A stretch of 64,000 bases of DNA, taken from assembly GCA_964036045.1 (NCBI GenBank), contig OZ038378.1:190712001-190776000 (forward strand), given 5' to 3'. The notes beneath the pieces were generated by a model. It was not told the DNA's origin and made no database searches. It saw nothing but the letters and a program-made list of their open reading frames with translations. Positions 2,089-64,000 of this stretch are shown here, piece by piece. Position 1 is the stretch's first letter. Each line of letters begins with the position of its first letter. Source of the stretch: Eutreptiella sp. 'Long Island Sound 2002' (lineage: Eukaryota; Protista; Euglenida). The translations under genes and the position numbers were made by a program.

Positions 2089-42778
<40,690 letters not shown>

Positions 42779-53600: not shown

Positions 53601-55569
53601 GACTGGAAAAAACCCCCTTTGGGTAGAGGAGTACTACAGCATCAGGGCAAGGCTGCTTGCTGCACTTTGCCGTGAGCTGTGGACCCACAGGGTTTCGCAC
53701 CTGAGTTCCTGTGAAAAGAACAGTTTGACACATATGTCCCAGAATGAATAGTTCCCAGCCCCAGCAACTCTGTGGAACTATAAATTGGTGTCAATACCAG
53801 ACCAATCTCCAGATGAGTGCGCCGGGGCCTGTGGTCTGGTTTGCAATGTATCATGTGGTCCATTGACGTCTCGGCATGTTCTTGTCCAAATAAGGCCCTT
53901 CGGTCCCCGAAGTTTGACATTATGTGGGCCCAGAATCAGGCCCAGACAATGGGGGGGGGGGGGGGCTGCCTGCTTGCCGCACGAGGAAGTGAAAGCCTCT
54001 GCAATGCAATTTCCCCCAAACTTCCCAAATTGCACTATCACGGATCGAAATGCCCCAGTTGGACATTCTTTCCAACTTTTCTCCAAGAGATGCTGCATGT
54101 TGATCTGTTGACACTATCGCTTTCCACAAGGAACGCAGGTCCACATCGGAGTGCTGATGCATGCGCCAGCACGTCATCAGAGATCATTAAACAAAAGGTG
54201 TGGACAGAAAGGCCCTAAAATTTGGCAACACACATATATGGAAGAATTGCATAGGACCAATCGTAGTAAATGTAGGAAAGGATGAGGGGACTGTAGCACG
54301 CCACGTGTTGTCCCTACAGCGATGTCCATGTGGCACAAAGGCGCAACCAAATCATATGCCCCCCCATGACTCCAAAATGAGGAGTTTTACTCAGCGCCAA
54401 GTTGCCAAAAGAATCTACACTTCTGATACTGGAAGGCTTCTCTTCCGCAGGTGCGCTGCAAGTGCGCCGCAGGCGCACTACAGGGGCCGTAGGGGAACAG
54501 AGGACGGCAGCTTTACCCCTTGTAGTACCTGCTGATGGCACAGGCCCACATTGGGGCTAATAGGCGTCTATAGGACGCCAATCTGTGTGATTGGGCACCG
54601 CTGCCAATGTGCGGTTGGCCGTGGAATGGCTGCCTATTGTGGCTGTACTTGTGCCACATGGGATTGATAGGCAGATAAGAGTGGCCCGGTCCTCAGGTGC
54701 TTTGAGTCAGGCCTCCCTCCCCATTGAGGCAGCACACTCGAGAAGAATGCGCCACCTCCCACCTGCTGTTGCACTTCGCCCCCTCTCGCACACATCCGGC
54801 ACATGCCCTTCCAGAACAGCTCTGCACTCGGCCGAGTGTCACACGTGCTCCGTTCAGACAGTTATGGGTCACCCCGGCCGGGCTCGACAGGGCCCCTGCC
54901 TGCGGGACGCGACTTCCTGATGGCCTCAACACACAGACCGCTGTTGGTACGGCAAAAGAAGGGTCGTCCTGAGGCAGCCCTGAAACGTCCCGCCACAATG
55001 CACCGCCCTGTACTCTGCATCACTGTGCAAAGGCCTGCGCCCTGTCATACAGTACCACAGACCTGCAAGGGCTCGATCACGGAGTCGAAGGCAATGTCCC
55101 GCATCAGCGCAAAGTGCGCCAGAACGACGTGCTCCAGCTGCGGCCGGACCCACTGGGCGCTGGGCCTGTGCCGGACCCAGGCCGTCATGCAGACGCCCGC
55201 CTGCACCCGCACGGGGAGCTCCGGGTCCCGCATGAGGGCCACCGTCCCCGCGACCACGGAGCGGTGGTGCTCCGGCACCCGCCACTGCACCCGCCGGTAC
55301 TGCGCGCACACCCACACCGCCCGCGCCCGCAGGTGCCCGTGGGGGCTGCACAGCTGCGGCAGGACGTGCTGCACGAGCGCGGCCTCGACGCGCGGGCGCC
55401 ACCCCGGGGCCGCGAGGAAGCGCGCGTGCAGCACGCCCAGCGCGAACAGGGCTCCGTCCTGCGTCGCGGGGTCGCACGCGCGCCCCGCGGTGTCCAGGGC
55501 CTGCGCGACGCACGCCAGGACGTGCTCCCGCAGGTCGGCTCGGTGGAACGGCTGCACGCGCTGTGCGAC
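50547..55569 (-). CDS. IPO7: Importin-7/8 family karyopherin (SAD2/Nmd5-type), 3' three exons; N-terminal exons not found in the window
   Basis: Exons 55569-55063 (507 nt), 52740-51394 (1347 nt) and 50651-50547 (105 nt, TAA), all GT-AG phase 0. Motifs QDGALFALGVL, VQHVLPQLCSPHGHLRARAVWV, LMRDPELPVRVQA and an acidic C-terminal loop. The symbol is family-level only. Confidence 0.9.
51394..52740 (-). CDS. IPO7: Importin-7/8-like exon (HEAT repeats plus acidic loop)
   Basis: cgcgcag|gtg ... cag|gtgctc. Confidence 0.9.
55063..55569 (-). CDS. IPO7: Importin-7/8-like exon
   Basis: cctccag|gtc ... cag|gtctgt. Confidence 0.9.
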
Positions 55570-56009
55570 CTGGAGGAACGGCGGGATTGGCCGGGAAGAA
55601 GAAGCGCGGCCCTAAATCGAGGGGTGGGGGGGGGTTGCGATCAGGGAGGGTCCAATCCGGTTGCGAAAAATTGTGGGGAAATTGCGGGGGAAAAATTGTG
55701 GTGCCGCAACCAAACCTCCCGAAGCCTTGGGGAGCAACACTTCTGCACAGCTCAGGATATTTCTGTGTCTCTTCAAACAAAAAATTTACGAAGAATTGCA
55801 GAAAATTGCGAAAAATTGCGAACCGCAATCCCCCCCCCCCCCCCGCCTACACCCTCACAAGCAAAGCGCGGGGGACCATCCCACGCAGTTGTCAAAATAC
55901 ACCCATTTCAGTGGCCGAGTGCCATGGGCAATTATGAGGAAGAAGAGCAAATGCGCAGTGGATCTGTTTGGGGTTGAACTCACCCCTGACCACCTCAACA
56001 ACATTCACC

Positions 56010-56017
56010 CGCACACC

Positions 56018-56058
<41 letters not shown>

Positions 56059-56159
56059 ACACACCCACACACACCCACACACACTCACACACTCACACAC
56101 TCACACACTCACACACACTCACACTCACACTCACACTCACACTCACACTCACACTCACA

Positions 56160-56256
<97 letters not shown>
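56010..56256. repeat. (CA)n/(CACACT)n microsatellite
   Basis: Directly visible. Confidence 0.97.
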
Positions 56257-56258
<2 letters not shown>

Positions 56259-56689
56259 CGTGCGGGAAAACCAGTGGGGACCAAACGCGGGGCACAACGT
56301 CAGTGAAGACGAAAGCAGGCGAAGGCAGAGCACTGGTCACCGAGACAATTTCATCAGGCCATTAACAAAAAGGTAGGCAAGGTCCTTTCTGAGACAGGAG
56401 TGACGGTGTACAGGAGTTTGTTCTCACAGTGCAAGTTGCGCTGATCACTACAGACCCTGCCCACTGCCCGGCCCTGTCTAGCCAATGATTGTATGATCTG
56501 TTGAAAACCGCAGCGCTACTTACATGCCTACTCTGGAGGTACTTAGCTGGAGACGGGTGTAACCACCCGCTCACACACACACAGACTCCAAGGGGGGCCG
56601 TCATGGTCAGTGAATCCGACGCCTTTCGCTGTCGCTTTGTGGCGCACACCGTGGCGTGTCGTGGTGTTGGTGTTTTCTTGCTGTGGTGT

Positions 56690-56755
56690 GTGCTACCCCA
56701 GCGGTTGAATCGCTGGGCTCGTGCCGTGAAGGCGCCGGTTCGATTCCCGCTGTGC
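56690..56755 (+). mobile_element. tRNA-like Pol III promoter head (+)
   Basis: Degenerate A box TACCCCAGCGG at 56694 and B box GGTTCGATTCC at 56737; 43-nt spacing. Confidence 0.45.
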
Positions 56756-57014
56756 GCATGGCTGCACTGCCGAAGAGAAGACTCGCTGCAGGAGCCCGGC
56801 TGCAGCGAATGCGCCCCCCTCGCCACGCTGCCGGGGTTCAAGACGCGCAAGCGGCGCGCGCTGCCGGAGGGGGCGGTGGTGCGTTTTTGTGGGGCGCGTG
56901 TAGGGGGTCGGGGGTTTGGGGGGGTTGCCTGAAAAAGCGAGGCGCACCGCCCGCTGCCGGTGCCCGTGGACTCGCTGGCCGCGTGTGCTGTTGTAGGGGG
57001 CGGTGGTGCGTTTA

Positions 57015-57090
57015 CGACGATAGGAGGATTCGAACCTCCGCTATAGGCAGACGAGTCTATGTCGCTGACCACTGGTCCACTCCAAGCCTC
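57015..57090 (-). mobile_element. tRNA-like Pol III promoter head (-)
   Basis: A box TGGACCAGTGG at 57079-57069 and B box GGTTCGAATCC at 57036-57026; 43-nt spacing; no acceptor stem. Confidence 0.6.
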
Positions 57091-57282
57091 TTACATGTCT
57101 GTGGCACGAACATGCACATTCATGGGTTACACACACATTGTCTCCCAAGGGGGGCAGTCATGGTTGCTGGGTTTAACTTTGGCGGCGTGGAGGTGGAGGA
57201 TTTCCCAGTCTCCGCACCAGAAGCCTGTGGTTCCGTCCGGTGACAGGGATGGGTCCAGGTGCCAACTGCTGTAGCTGTCCCC

Positions 57283-59383
<2,101 letters not shown>

Positions 59384-59689
59384 GGGGGTGGCGGGGGGTA
59401 GTCCAATGGCAGTTGTTGTCTGTGGACCACTCTGTTTGTTCCTGCCACTTCCCGTCAGTCCGGCCCGAGTGTGGCTCACGGCGCCGGTGGGGCAGCCACT
59501 CATGGTTTCAGAGTGGCGTGTGCTGACAAACGGTGGGGCCACCTCCTCTGGTAAGGTATTGGTATTGGTTCAGTTTCTCTCAGTTTTCCCTTCCACGCTC
59601 TCAACCAGGGTCCACCCCTCCCTCCTTCCCTTACAACCCCTGCCCTCTCATTTCGTTCCTCCCTCCCTCCCTCCTTCCCCCATCCCAGC

Positions 59690-59785
59690 ACATCACTGAA
59701 GGAAATCCCAGAGGTTCAGAAGTATTATGCCCAGTTTGGAGATCGTGTTCCTGTTGAGCTGACGCAGGCTATGGAGAATGCTGGT
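59690..59785 (+). pseudogene. PCK: C-terminal fragment of GTP-dependent PEP carboxykinase
   Basis: LKEIPEVQKYYAQFGDRVPVELTQ matches the PEPCK-GTP C-terminal F-G-D-R-x-P-x-E-L helix. Confidence 0.7.
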
Positions 59786-59918
59786 ATGGGCATGAAGAGT
59801 GCTGGCAACATCAGCTTTGATCTGGCAGTGACGACCTTCATTGGATCGCTGCTGAGTGACGATCTGACTGCATTCATGGATTGTGCAAACGCGAGTGATC
59901 TTTTCCTCTGCCTCAGCG

Positions 59919-60947
59919 ATGCCGTTTGAACCTGGACCGCCCCCGTTCACACCTCCAGGGGTCGCCTTCTCGGAGGCATACAAGCCCCTTTGGCATTTCT
60001 TTCGTTTCCAGGATGATGAGCAGGAGGCGCAGTATCGCCAGACATTTGATCAACTATCGCGTTTTGCTGGCCTCATCTGGTGTATCTTCCACATCATTAT
60101 AGCGGTGCTGGTTCCATCACTCGGGGTTTCTCAAGGTCACGACAGTCGTTCCTACCTTGCATTCGCGCCCAGTCTTGGGGGGACCCTGCTGACCTCCATG
60201 GCGCTCTTTCTGCCCAGCTTGATGCGTCACACAAAGACGATTTGTAGCCTAGCAACGGTGCTGCTGGCGGCGTGTCAGGGGTGGATCGTGCACACCCATA
60301 CCTCTGTCGCAGCGGCTGATCTTGAGCGACATAGGCTCTAGTTGACGCTGGACAAGCTCTCTGGCGATACAGCTGCAATGCATCAATTGGATGCATATGT
60401 CCAAGAATCCACTGGAACCCATGTTCTGGATGTTCAGCTGATGGTCTGTATCTCACATTGCATTGTGCTATTCATCGTAGGCTTTTGCCCCTCTTCTGTG
60501 GTCTGCTGTCTATTCTTGCCCATCAGCATTTGCATTGTGCATCTTTTCAGTCCGCTCGTTCCAGTACAACCCGTCCTGATCCGATTGGGCGTTTCTGCAT
60601 TGGTGGGTTTGTTCCTGCTGGCGGGTACTGGCAGCTTCACGTCGAAGCGCCGGAGCTTCTTTCTGCTGTTGGACCACTTTGAGTCATCTCTGCACAAAGC
60701 AGTGGCTGCCTCACAAAAGGCCGATAATATTCTGAACCACACGCTCAAGACTAACATGGCAGACGTGTGTGCTGAAATAGACCTGTTCCCCGCAAACAAC
60801 GACTGCACCGACCAACTCCATGCTCTCAATGATCTCCACCACGCCAACGGCCTGCCGAAGTGCCCGCAGGCTGTTGCGGCACCACCTCCCGGCACACGCG
60901 CTAACAACACGGCTTCATGTGTATGGGGGGAGCGTGCAGAGGTAGCG
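59919..60947 (+). pseudogene. Intronless fragment of a multi-TM sensor with His-kinase-like H-box, interrupted by a TAG
   Basis: ATG at 59919; FRFQDDEQEAQY followed by several hydrophobic segments; TAG at 60339; coiled segment and [18 protein letters not shown] (His near 60738). Confidence 0.65.
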
Positions 60948-63900
60948 GAGAAGACGCCGTTCCTGAAGTACCTGCACTCTGTGGGCGAGCCTGTGACACC
61001 AGGTGCAAAAGATGTTCCCTGGCCATGCAACTCTGACAACCGCTGGACTGTGCACTTCCCTGATGAACCCAGTGTGTGGTTGTTTGGCAGTGGATATGGA
61101 GACAACACATTGCTGGGCAAGAAGCGATATGCCCTGCGCATTGCATCCACCATGGCCCGCAAAGAGGGCTGGCGGGCAGAGCATTGCTTGATTTTGGGGC
61201 TGACATCACCAGAGGGCAAGGAATACTACATTGTTGCAGCCTTCACGAGTGCCAATGGCAAGACCAATCTTGCAATGCTGGTTCCGTCCGTTCCCGGCTA
61301 GAAGATGGTGATGTGTGGTGGGAGAGCATGACCAAGACCGCCTCCGAAGGCCTGATTGTTTGGACTGGCCAACCGTGGACCCCAGACTGTGGTCACAAGG
61401 CTGCACATCCAAATGCGCGGTACACGACGCCTGCATCTCAATGCCCTGTGATCGATCCTGAGTGGGAGAATCCGCAGGGTGTGCTCATCTGTGCCATTCA
61501 GTTTGGAGGTCGCCGCCCGAACCTGGTGCCATTGATGACGGAAGCTTTCAGCTGGAAGCATGGTGTGTTCATGGGATCCATCATCGGCTATGAGCCATGA
61601 GCTATGAGCTATGAGCTCATCAGCGGTGACGTGGTGACATGGTTGAACTGGTGACAGGGTGTGCCCATCAGTGCTTTTCTGTTTGGAGGTCAGGAATTAA
61701 CAGCACCCATCGATCCTGACATGGTGACGACGAACAATTGGGGCTGATCCTGTGGAGATGAAGAAGAAGCTGATTGGACTATTCAAGGGATGCATGGAAG
61801 GGCGCACCATGTACGTGATTCCATTCTGCATGGGACCCCTTGGATCACCATACTCCAAATTTAGTGTTGAGATCACGGACTCTGCATAAGTGGTGGTGAA
61901 CATGAAGTTCATGTGCCGCATTGGCACCAAGGTGCTGCGTCTGATTGACGAGAAGACGCCGTTCCTGAAGTATCTGCACTCTGTGGGCGAGCCTGTGACA
62001 CCAGGTGCAAAAGATGTTCCCAGGCCATGCAACTCTGACAACCGCTGGACTGTGCACTTCCCTGATGAACCCAGTGTGTGGTTGTTTGGCAATGGATATG
62101 GAGACAACACATTGCTGGGCAAGAAGCGATATGCCCTGCGCATTGCATCCACCATGGCCCGCCAAGAGGGCTGGCGGGCGGAGCATTGCTTGATTTTGGG
62201 GCTGACATCACCAGAGGGCAAGGAATACTACATTGTTGCAGCCTTCACGAGTGCCAATGGCAAGACCAATCTTGCAATGCTGGTTCCGTCCGTTCCCGGC
62301 TAGAAGATGGTGATGTGTGGTGGGAGAGCATGACCAAGACCGCCTCCGAAGGCCTGATTGTTTGGACTGGCCAGCCATGGACCCCAGACTGTGGTCACAA
62401 GGCTGCACATCCAAATGCGCGGTACACGACGCCTGCATCTCAATGCCCTGTGATCGATCCTCAGTGGGAGAATCCGCAGGGTGTGCTCATCTGTGCCATT
62501 CTGTTTGGAGGTCGCCGCCCGAACCTGGTGCCATTGGTGACGGAAGCTTTCAGCTGGAAGCATGGTGTGTTCATGGGATCCATCATCGGCTATCTGAGTG
62601 CAATGCAGACACTGGAGAAGAACTCCATCTTCGCAAACGCTGCGCTGACCCCAGATGGTGGTGGGTGATGGGAGAGCATGACTAAGACCGCCTCAGAAGG
62701 CCTCATTGATTGGACTGGCCAGCCGTGGACCCCAGACTGTGGTCGCAAGGCTGCACATCCGAATGCACCGTACACGACGCCTGCATCTCAATGCCCTGTG
62801 ATCGATCCTGAGTGGGAGATCCGAAGGATGTGCCCATCTGTGCCTTTCTGTTTGGAGGTCGCTGCCCGTACCTGGTGCCATTGGTGACGGAAGCTTCCAG
62901 CTGGAAGCATGGTGTGTTCATGGGATCCATCATCGGCTATCCGAGTGCAATGCAGACACTGGAGAAGAACTCCATCTTCACAAACGTTGCGCTGACCCCA
63001 GATGGTGATGTGTAGTGGGAGAGCATGACCAAGACCGCCTCCGAAGGCCTGATTGTTTGGACTGGCCAGCCGCGAACCCCAGACTGTGGTCGCAAGGCTG
63101 CACATCCGAATGCGCGGTACACGACGCCTGCATCTCAGTGCCCTGTGATCGATCCTGAGTGGGAGAATCCGAAGGGTGTACCCATCTGTGCCATTCTGTT
63201 TGGAGGTCGCTGCCCGTACCTGGTGCCATTGGTGACGGAAGCTTCCAGCTGGAAGCATGGTGTGTTCATGGGATCCATCATCGGCTATCTGAGTGCAATG
63301 CAGACACTGGAGAAGAACTTCATCTTCGCAAACGCTGCGCTGACCCCAGATGGTGATGTGTGGTGGGAGAGCATGACCAAGACCGCCTCCGAAGGCCTGA
63401 CTGATTGGACTAGCCAACCGTGGACCCCAGACTGTGGTCACAAGGCTGCACATCCGAATGCGCGGTACACGACGCCTGCATCTCAGTGCCCTGTGATCGA
63501 TCCTGAGTGGGAGAATCCGAAGGGTGTGTCCATCTGTGCCATTCTGTTTGGAGGTCGCCGCCCGAACCTGGTGCCATTGATGACGGAAGCTTTCAGCTGG
63601 AAGCATGGTGTGTTCATGGGATCCATCATCGGCTATGAGCCATGAGCTATGAGCTATGAGCTCATCAGCGGTGACGTGGTGACATGGTTGAACTGGTGAC
63701 AGGGTGTGCCCATCAGTGCTTTTCTGTTTGGAGGTCAGGAATTAACAGCACCCATCGATCCTGACATGGTGACGACGAACAATTGGGGCTGATCCTGTGG
63801 AGATGAAGAAGAAGCTGATTGGACTATTCAAGGGATGCATGGAAGGGCGCACCATGTACGTGATTCCATTCTGCATGGGACCCCTTGGATCACCATACTC

Positions 63901-64000
63901 CAAATTTAGTGTTGAGATCACGGACTCTGCATAAGTGGTGGTGAACATGAAGTTCATGTGCCGCATTGGCACCAAGGTGCTGCGTCTGATTGACGAGAAG
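60948..64000 (+). pseudogene. PCK: Nested tandem array of intronless, inactivated GTP-PEPCK fragments (runs off the window)
   Basis: Motifs [54 protein letters not shown] and FGGRR..VP. A 348-bp unit has junctions at 62591, 62938, 63286 and 63634, inside a 2,045-bp repeat (61589 to 63634). Stops and frameshifts are present. Confidence 0.95.

Follow-up and report, generated by a model that had tools for sequence, protein, structure and literature searches.

The window, a stretch of 64,000 nucleotides from the euglenid Eutreptiella sp. 'Long Island Sound 2002', ends within a composite, non-autonomous and non-coding repeat cassette, the left third of which occupies positions 59381-64000. The cassette is 13.4 kb long at this locus and ~18 kb in its fullest copies, and its right end was found at window-equivalent position 72802, 8.8 kb past the window end. 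Between 59696 and 64000 lie disordered pieces of GTP-type PEPCK, accompanied by fragments of two other genes (118 nt of one, and 1 kb of one for a membrane protein), by fillers of (GCTATGA)n and by an array with a 348-nt period (table 1). An intact parental unit, compared by tblastn and blastn, served to place the PEPCK pieces in window coordinates. A sequence-only reading of this DNA had described a mosaic of PEPCK and other gene fragments, with repeat filler and tandem amplification. Every item that it listed was recovered, with Pfam and BLAST matches far beyond chance; the start of the unit, which it had put at 59690, lies at 59381.

Table 1. Features of the cassette and its left surroundings in the window
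Feature	Position	Strand	Remarks
17.9-kb local tandem duplication, in-window part	55272..64000	+	window-equivalent 55272-73182, repeated once
Compound microsatellite (CA)n-(CACG)n-(CGAC)n-(GACA)n-(CA)n, left cassette boundary	57283..59380	.	TRF
Cassette left end 'R2'	59381..59688	+	first ~220 nt a dispersed repeat family; final part pyrimidine-rich, terminal CAG
PEPCK C-terminal fragment, parental aa 562-589	59696..59784	+	97.8% nt identity to C3 unit A
118-nt mid-ORF piece (WGMKSAGNISFDL) of a gene in the C2:14.25 Mb repeat array	59780..59897	+	97.5% to open frame at C2:14252821
Multi-pass membrane / receiver-domain-like gene fragment	59897..60947	+	96% to C20:31920961, with 456-aa ORF at C20:31920983
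PEPCK, parental nt 1279-1635, aa 160-281	60948..61304	+	TGG-to-TAG stop at 61299
PEPCK, parental nt 1817-2101, aa 341-435	61305..61589	+	181 nt missing at left seam 61304/61305
Filler: (GCTATGA)n, other sequence, PEPCK snippet	61590..61727	+	TRF and comparison with parent
Second truncated PEPCK unit, parental nt 1058-1635 and 1817-2101 (aa 88-281 and 341-435)	61728..62591	+	93.8-95.1%
Three further copies of the 348-nt PEPCK segment, parental nt 1754-2101, aa 321-435	62592..63634	+	head-to-tail
Second filler copy	63635..63772	+	(GCTATGA)n at 63632-63662
Third truncated PEPCK unit, start (parental aa 88 onwards)	63773..64000	+	runs past window end

The Pfam matches in the window were strong (PEPCK_N, E = 3e-23 to 2e-26; PEPCK_GTP, E = 2e-37 to 4e-78), and they covered only parts of the domains, namely positions 85-218 of PEPCK_N and 1-43 and 87-200 of PEPCK_GTP. 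No open frame for a functional GTP-dependent PEPCK, with both domains complete, was present in the window. The seam at 61304/61305 is seen again at 62306/62307 and is common to all truncated units, and with the 181 nt deleted there the GDDIAW and NPE-GFFGVAPGT segment of PEPCK is lost. The second truncated unit is a 1002-bp direct repeat of 60948-61589, and the 348-nt segment forms a tandem array at 62305-63636 (3.8 copies, 94%, TRF). The first filler contains (GCTATGA)4.4 at 61587-61617 and the snippet QGVPISAFLFGG (36 nt, 61656-61691), which agrees with the parent at 33 of 36 positions and was rightly noticed before as a differently worded PEPCK micro-fragment. Two near-full PEPCK pseudogenes lie in the cassette part beyond the window. 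They are broken by a frameshift near aa 176 and by a TAA, lesions that recur in such units at every locus, and all cassette copies carry identical frameshifts and stops. There were no inverted repeats within 59400-64000 and no inverted PEPCK copies.

The PEPCK parents are intron-free, in-frame, head-to-tail concatemers. One, at C3:13956072-13977551, is a single stop-free frame of 7,247 aa with ~12 PEPCK units, and the second, on C4, is a single open frame of 4,829 aa with ~8 units. The cassette fragments are 93-98% identical to unit A of the C3 concatemer and only 77% to the C4 array; unit A is the dominant donor. Because the parent is built in this way, two arguments of the sequence-only reading prove little. 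The lack of introns, which it took as a sign of cDNA origin, is a property of the parent itself, an outcome that it had named in advance as refuting its view, and much of the shuffled order is accounted for by the head-to-tail arrangement. The fragments crossing parental exon junctions that it proposed to look for were not found either, since the parents are intron-free where sampled. This parental structure also suits a purely DNA-level origin, in which a piece of the C3 PEPCK array moved, was scrambled by slippage in replication, unequal crossing-over and template switching at microhomologies (FoSTeS/MMBIR type), and took up snippets from other loci. The cassette would then have been dispersed between (CA)n tracts, either as part of segmental duplications or through excised circles that reinserted. 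From such a parent, deletions alone yield a later piece followed by an earlier one. We consider this origin possible, if rather doubtful, in view of the seams described below. Multi-unit GTP-PEPCK proteins of ~1,800 aa are also found in Porphyridium purpureum, chytrids and MMETSP transcriptomes; like the euglenid parent they are in-frame concatemers of complete units, but they have three units against ~12 and ~8 per euglenid frame, and this comparison concerns the parent gene and not the mosaic.

At least five donor genes contributed to the cassette (PEPCK, C2, C20-type, C21 and C13), all in sense orientation, and every non-PEPCK fragment falls within one open frame of its parent. The identities were 97.5% for the C2 donor, 97% for C21, 96% for C20/C5/C1 and 93% for C13. 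The piece that had been left unassigned in the sequence-only reading was traced to the C2 gene, whose frame is open for 399 aa and matched no Pfam family. The membrane-gene fragment is composed of a 22-nt 5' UTR and ~aa 1-312, with a 621-nt internal deletion near 60855 followed by ~100 nt of a receiver-like part, and it has an in-frame TAG at 60339. The order of its parts agrees with that of an intact 742-aa paralogue, P0256, in which the parts before PEPCK are contiguous; the inversion sits in the C20 copy. Of its former description as a multi-TM/H-box fragment, the multi-TM part stood, while the 'H-box' is a likeness at motif level only: no significant Pfam family was obtained for the fragment, the 456-aa parent or the 742-aa paralogue. 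The identity as a histidine kinase was rejected for the same lack of a significant match, the C21 paralogue giving only HATPase_c_2 at E = 0.03.

The cassette leader of 1,564 nt occurs, at 98-100% identity, 15 times in the assembly; the 15 cassette copies are distributed over at least 10 contigs and lie between (CA)n tracts. At the position equivalent to the left boundary in the window, a (CA/CACG)n tract of 263 bp is present in the C5 copy and (CA)n in the C20 variant. The C5 copy is flanked by (CA)n on both sides, its right end being (CAATAA)3 followed by (CA)n. Its left flank is single-copy over 6.4 kb apart from an old repeat, and for this reason homeologous or haplotype copies were rejected as the cause of the multi-locus presence. 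At the window locus, 15.9 kb of the local duplication (period 17.9 kb) aligned at 99.0% with an offset of ~17.85-17.9 kb. Positions 2-220 of R2 as query matched ~12 other loci at 81-88%, all with the identical start base, and this repeat family always adjoins a (CA)n or (TACA)n tract. A long hairpin was predicted for the first 72 nt of R2, with a fold z-score of only -1.8, and the cassette left end had no match in Rfam at the gathering or E-value threshold; a ribozyme or other known RNA was rejected on these grounds. For the neighbouring repeat R1 a tRNA-derived SINE was rejected, as ARAGORN found no tRNA.

The region is highly repetitive and two of the copies lie on small unplaced contigs (C1312 and C2125), as might be expected if repeats had been collapsed or mis-joined in the assembly. 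Such an artefact is hardly credible, however, since the C1 and C5 copies have an identical fine structure, including 3.8 x 348-nt units, within different single-copy flanks, and for a chimeric frame of 319 aa, which joins membrane and PEPCK pieces, 12 near-identical members were obtained from another assembly, in ENA, where they are spread over at least 7 long contigs (0.45-2.1 Mb). At least 12 copies keep this frame open, and it could in principle encode an expressed chimeric protein; the sequence-only reading had thought of a gene-fragment shuffling system or of a regulatory RNA against PEPCK. We regard a functional unit of either kind, chimeric protein or regulatory RNA, as very improbable. 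Because the copies are 98-100% identical, the open frame says nothing about selection. It begins with TTG just after a stop, ends at the new TAG and has no catalytic PEPCK segment, and the chimera matched assembly-derived ENA entries only and no transcriptome-derived protein. The PEPCK pieces are all on one strand, so no hairpin RNA is possible, and the lack of inverted PEPCK copies together with the identical inactivating lesions in all copies goes against both earlier suggestions. As far as the sequence tells, the cassette has no evident function, the 181 catalytic nt being deleted and stops and frameshifts being common to the copies.

Maize Helitrons and rice Pack-MULEs carry gene-fragment cargo, and the fragments of several genes, in the same orientation within a mobile multi-copy unit, recall these elements, as the sequence-only reading had proposed. 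Nevertheless, capture by a DNA transposon of the Helitron, Pack-MULE or CACTA type with later amplification is most unlikely. A comparison of the two ends of the C5 copy (800 nt on the left, 820 nt on the right) gave no TIRs or LTRs, only chance matches of 8-9 nt. The cassette ends are ACTGGGGG... and ...CAATAACA(CA)n and not the TC...CTRR with hairpin of a Helitron, and (CA)n stands at the flanks where A/T or a short TSD would be expected. The lack of inverted repeats in this part of the window points the same way. Moreover, capture from genomic DNA would not yield splice-type seams. At the far boundary, which had been suggested as a place to search, no TE termini, poly(A) or visible TSD were seen, the ends compared being those of the C5 copy.

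Several of the seams between the pieces are of splice type. The C2 and membrane-gene pieces are joined exactly as a GT donor to an AG acceptor, the acceptor lying in a 5' UTR: the next bases of the C2 parent are GT, and the membrane-gene fragment starts directly after the parental ttgttgtctccAG, a polypyrimidine-AG 22 nt upstream of the ATG. The parental borders of the 181-nt PEPCK deletion are exactly GTGCGT...CCCCAG, the C21 fragment ends before GTATGT, and the first base of the near-full pseudogenes follows a polypyrimidine-AG in the C20 variant. A truncated spliced-leader stump of 10 nt, ATTTTTTTCG, lies exactly where the C21 fragment meets the piece that follows; it holds the sole run of at least 7 T on the + strand of the cassette. 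GT and AG are common dinucleotides, and at one of the seams the placement is ambiguous by 2 nt, so that its GT-AG reading has a chance expectation of roughly 1% and is not proof. The remaining seams have 2-5 nt of microhomology or filler: GCTGG (5 nt) joins the PEPCK C-terminal fragment to the C2 piece, CTGC stands at the 621-nt deletion, GAG joins the membrane-gene fragment to the PEPCK piece at 60948, and TC (2-3 nt) joins the 348-nt copies head to tail. Seams with microhomology and filler are equally typical of replication-based DNA template switching.

Based on the splice-type seams, the start at an acceptor, the leader stump and the uniform sense orientation, we infer an RNA intermediate, and we hold with moderate confidence that the cassette is a chimeric retro-pseudogene that was secondarily amplified. 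The joining of cDNA-derived fragments by RT template switching, as suggested before, is thus retained on these grounds and not on the argument from introns. The DNA-level origin has in its favour the microhomology or filler at most seams, tandem duplications on four scales, (CA)n on both sides, and the absence of poly(A), a full spliced leader and a visible TSD; yet it leaves unexplained why the start of a fragment should coincide exactly with the polypyrimidine-AG acceptor of a 5' UTR, why a deletion should have exact GTGCGT and CCCCAG borders, why the only T-run should be leader-like and located at a seam, and why all five donors should be in sense orientation. The same absences speak against an RNA origin. 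Runs of A or T in the cassette are all shorter than 9 nt, a full-length spliced leader was absent from the entire cassette, and the C5 copy flanks had no common motif that could be a TSD, which (CA)n on both sides would mask. The Euglena spliced-leader 24-mer occurred 5,458 times genome-wide against 0 for the control, with 0 copies in the window, where the DinoSL pattern was also absent; the genome is accordingly that of a euglenid, and a dinoflagellate origin was rejected. For one retrotransposition event, 18 kb with internal minisatellites is a long unit.

The anatomy of the cassette, its donor genes, the sequences at the seams, the number of copies and their common lesions are observed facts; the order of events that follows is a reconstruction. 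If the cassette is indeed a retro-pseudogene, the starting templates would have been aberrantly spliced mRNAs, including one with an inter-gene GT/AG join onto a spliced-leader acceptor, and their reverse transcription would have proceeded with template jumps at short microhomologies. Internal tandem duplications, at periods of 348 nt, 1 kb and ~6 kb, may then have enlarged the product, and it would have reached at least 10 contigs, each time between (CA)n tracts; at the window locus, one more duplication would have included the cassette together with 4 kb of flank. The spread may have been a ride on a (CA)n-seeking LINE or a microsatellite-mediated DNA duplication. Neither the right tail of the C5 copy nor R2 was similar to the one candidate LINE locus compared (with a 1.6-kb (TG)n tract), at which no reverse transcriptase domain was detectable. 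A wider idea, which we consider unlikely, is that euglenid spliced-leader acceptors occasionally take a cryptic donor from another pre-mRNA and that the chimeric mRNAs are reverse-transcribed, so that spliceosome and RT would form a heritable route of exon shuffling, whose products may become large non-autonomous elements spread by (CA)n-seeking LINE machinery.

As a kind of system the cassette is not new, and there is no hint of a function. Template jumps of LINE RT give rise to chimeric retro-pseudogenes of two or three parts, as in U6/L1 of mammals (PMC4476161) and in a tripartite pseudogene of Magnaporthe (PMC2104539). In these, as in the cassette, different cellular RNAs are fused directly in one orientation, with seams at template 5' ends or microhomologies, and the products are dead on arrival. 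However, the cassette has at least five donors, some splice-type seams and no poly(A) or visible TSD, and its internal amplification and its dispersal as an 18-kb unit with (CA)n flanks came later. In dinoflagellates, retrogenes carry DinoSL relics (PMC6050394, PMC5585692, PMC12014239), and in both cases the hosts use SL trans-splicing and leader remnants persist in mRNA-derived DNA copies; but the cassette belongs to a euglenid, its 10-nt stump stands at an internal seam only and not at the 5' end, and its copies are fragmentary and non-functional.

Among microsatellite-targeting elements, Waldo and Mino are insect non-LTR retrotransposons of the R1 clade. The cassette resembles such elements in its location between two stretches of one microsatellite and in its single orientation, but it has no reverse transcriptase and no end sequence in common with the compared LINE locus.

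The biology of Euglena nuclear genomes is poorly charted, and in the 2.37-Gb Euglena assembly a third of the genome was classed only as unknown repeat (PMC11252322). We found no description of retro-copied trans-spliced mRNAs in euglenids in the literature searched. If our reading is true, abundant mRNAs were mis-spliced, chimerised, written back and amplified to ~15 copies of 13-18 kb, and the cassette could serve as a marker by which cryptic splicing and the activity of reverse transcriptase might be studied in a protist with trans-splicing. Such a process would inflate gene-family counts (132 PEPCK_GTP and 153 PEPCK_N domain matches were obtained genome-wide) and mislead gene prediction; the 319-aa chimeric 'protein' is already in a public collection.

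Whole-genome searches with PF00821 and PF17297 gave 132 and 153 matches, among which two PEPCK loci, on C3 and C4, were intact. Translation of the array locus L001 showed PEPCK units that are directly contiguous, with no stop and no intron between them. Because three-unit PEPCK proteins (~1,800 aa) occur in Porphyridium, chytrids and MMETSP transcriptomes, the concatenation is a real architecture; the Porphyridium and chytrid proteins have three units, whereas the C3 and C4 arrays have ~12 and ~8, and arrays of this length look unusual. Two unit variants alternate in both arrays (L001-L024) with a 3.6-kb period.

The mosaic was mapped by tblastn and blastn against one intact 598-aa parental unit from the reverse strand of L001, and GTP-type PEPCK pieces were confirmed by Pfam at 60342-63934. 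These searches bore out every item in the list of pieces given by the sequence-only reading. The PEPCK pieces matched unit A of the C3 array at 93-98% identity, against only 77% for the C4 array. The same reading had argued for a cDNA origin from the lack of introns, an argument that fails, since the parents are themselves intron-free in these parts, the very condition that this reading had named as refuting it; intron absence is therefore uninformative. The order in which a later piece precedes an earlier one is unremarkable as well, because the PEPCK parent is arranged head-to-tail.

Coordinates of the parental arrays, mosaic pieces and pseudogenes (C numbers are contigs of the assembly; unlabelled positions are window positions; window-equivalent, numbering continued past the window end)
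Feature	Position	Strand	Details
PEPCK parent	C3:13956072-13977551		one open frame, 7,247 aa; ~12 units
PEPCK parent	C4:158533526-158547802		one frame, 4,829 aa; ~8 units
1,564-nt copies	59382-60945		C1 two, C3, C4 two, C5, C7 two, C10 three, C11, C18, C1312, C2125
PEPCK aa 562-589	59696-59784	+	tblastn/blastn vs parental unit
118-nt piece	59780-59897		parent mid-ORF at C2:14252821; 97.5% identity
Non-PEPCK sequence	59785-60947	+	tblastn/blastn map
Membrane-gene piece	59897-60855		parent 456-aa ORF at C20:31920983; 96% identity; paralogues C5, C1
PEPCK aa 160-281	60948-61304	+	tblastn/blastn
PEPCK aa 341-435	61305-61589	+	tblastn/blastn
Filler with (GCTATGA)n	between 61589 and 61728
PEPCK aa 88-281 plus 341-435	61728-62591	+	tblastn/blastn
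Three more 348-nt copies, PEPCK aa 321-435	up to 63634	+	tblastn/blastn
Second filler	between 63634 and 63773
PEPCK aa 88 onwards	from 63773	+	tblastn/blastn
Near-full PEPCK pseudogene 1	window-equivalent 64868-66659		frameshift near aa 176
Near-full PEPCK pseudogene 2	window-equivalent 71016-72802		frameshift near aa 176

Comparison with P0256, the intact 742-aa paralogue of the membrane gene, showed that the ~100 nt after 60855 come from the same gene beyond a 621-nt deletion. Two pieces lie in the 407 nt ahead of each near-full pseudogene: 179 nt from a related gene on C21 (97%) and 175-181 nt from a tandem gene on C13 (93%). All five donor genes are in sense on the + strand. The non-PEPCK donors had no significant Pfam match, and the "H-box" named earlier amounts to a motif-level resemblance. 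The C20 "parent" locus is itself rearranged, because part of its receiver-like region (L033:2881-3026, C20:31922581-31922726) is inverted relative to P0256.

Several seams resemble splicing products. At the PEPCK seam 1635/1817 the parent reads ...GGAAG|GTGCGT... and ...CCCCAG|ATGG..., and the mosaic ...GAAG|ATGG...; the missing 181 nt open with GT and close with AG, both in a sequence context good for a donor and an acceptor, and their loss shifted the frame and took out the GDDIAW and NPE-GFFGVAPGT segment. Because 2 nt (AG) are ambiguous, this seam can be placed in three ways, and a GT-AG reading would arise by chance with a probability of ~3/256. In their parents, the C2 piece is followed by GTGGTG and the membrane piece is immediately preceded by ...ttgttgtctccAG. 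The membrane piece starts 22 nt ahead of its ORF's ATG, which is the position where a spliced-leader acceptor would be expected, and the joint of the two pieces in the mosaic is the exact donor-acceptor product. The near-full pseudogenes start at CACATTCC, and in a variant cassette at C20:40066370 this start base is preceded by a pyrimidine tract plus AG. The C21 piece stops just before a parental GTATGT and is followed by ATTTTTTTCG, which equals the leader's final 11 nt with one T missing, then by 17 nt and the C13 piece. Nowhere else on the cassette's + strand is there a run of at least 7 T, and ~0.01 chance occurrences were estimated at the cassette's base composition. The 24-mer of the Euglena spliced leader has 5,458 occurrences genome-wide (control, 0); on C1 it is scattered on both strands rather than confined to tandem SL-RNA gene arrays. 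The dinoflagellate leader was absent from the window, and on these two results we regard the genome as that of a euglenid close to Euglena gracilis.

Splice-type seams, a leader stump and uniform orientation are not easily explained by DNA breakage alone. The combination fits the proposed origin by template switching of a reverse transcriptase, although its no-intron basis has fallen away, and we consider it moderately probable that mis-spliced and chimeric mRNAs were reverse-transcribed with template jumps. The remaining seams show GCTGG, CTGC, GAG or TC microhomology, or filler including a 36-nt PEPCK snippet, and replication-based DNA template switching produces such seams as well. The usual marks of a retrocopy are lacking: neither poly(A) nor a full leader was found in the cassette, and no TSD was visible. 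Reverse transcription with template jumps is the known mechanism behind chimeric pseudogenes made by LINEs (PMC2104539, PMC4476161), and dinoflagellate retrogenes show it together with leader relics (PMC6050394).

The finished cassette is dispersed. Of the 1,564-nt stretch 59382-60945 there are 12 complete copies and 3 with internal deletions (98-100% identity), and every copy has the identical start base adjoining a microsatellite. Base-level reading covered the C1 copies and parts of those on C5 and C20, while the others were placed from coordinate tables. Because the 6.4 kb that flank the C5 copy on its left are single-copy, homeologous segments are ruled out as the source of the copies. 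A common right end, an (ACAC)185 tract ~18 kb from the left border, is found in the C5, C4, C11 and C2125 copies; the C1 copy is without this tail. An ENA assembly has 12 records of a 319-aa membrane-PEPCK chimeric frame, spread over at least 7 contigs (0.45-2.1 Mb), which argues against local mis-assembly.

Capture by a Helitron or Pack-type element had been proposed, but no TIRs, LTRs or Helitron ends were found in the cassette. (CA)n adjoins both cassette ends, and the first 220 nt are part of a repeat family; its other members, at C6, C3 and C20, are oriented the same way and likewise sit next to (CA)n or (TACA)n. At one candidate (CA)n-associated LINE locus, nothing resembled the cassette ends and no RT was detectable. 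The first 72 nt (59381-59452) and their C6, C3 and C20 relatives are well conserved and form a long G-rich/C-rich hairpin with no Rfam match.

No function is indicated for the cassette. Its coding content is nothing besides dead fragments, with lesions common to different loci (stops at 60339 and 61299, frameshifts, and TAA in near-full units); the youth of the copies is the sole reason why the 319-aa frame is still open. A regulatory RNA against PEPCK had been suggested, but all PEPCK pieces lie on one strand and no inverted repeats were found, so the locus cannot by itself give a hairpin RNA.

Reading 50 kb past the window revealed more truncated units, the two near-full pseudogenes and minisatellite spacers. 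The spacers between the PEPCK pseudogenes (L026:2600-5000 and L032:1-2720) consist of 20-nt (CACAGCGCCAAACACAGGGC) and 59-nt units; arrays of these units also occur at C7:8.06 Mb, C18:1.20 Mb, C19:20.5 Mb, C12:25.7 Mb and C26:9.86 Mb. The block at window-equivalent 55272-73182 has one further tandem copy at 99% identity. The junction of this 17.9-kb duplication falls within a ~386-nt repeat (L028:6764-7149, C1:190802763-190803148) whose copies at 9 or more loci elsewhere, on other contigs, share 99-100% identity. The left breakpoint of the duplication (55272) lies within a 170-aa open frame at 55045-55557 (- strand), by eye a putative HEAT-repeat importin-type exon (...GHLRARAVWVCAQY...).

The locus L035 (C20:40065701-40067200) holds a different PEPCK chimera with the same (CA)n plus R2 (59381-59688) left end; after a pyrimidine tract and AG, PEPCK aa 1-100 are fused to an unrelated coiled-coil-like frame, and L035:121-240 is similar to a TTAGGG-bearing element at 25340-25430. 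The neighbouring ~1-kb repeat R1 (56006-57282) has at least 40 copies (94-98% identity) and carries T-arm-like motifs, GGTTCGATTCC near 56737 and its complement near 57026; ARAGORN called no tRNA in it. It is flanked here by (AC)n on the left and, on the right, by a 2.1-kb compound microsatellite (57283-59380) whose unit shifts along its length from CA through CACG, CGAC and GACA to CA, and whose C5 counterpart spans only 263 bp.
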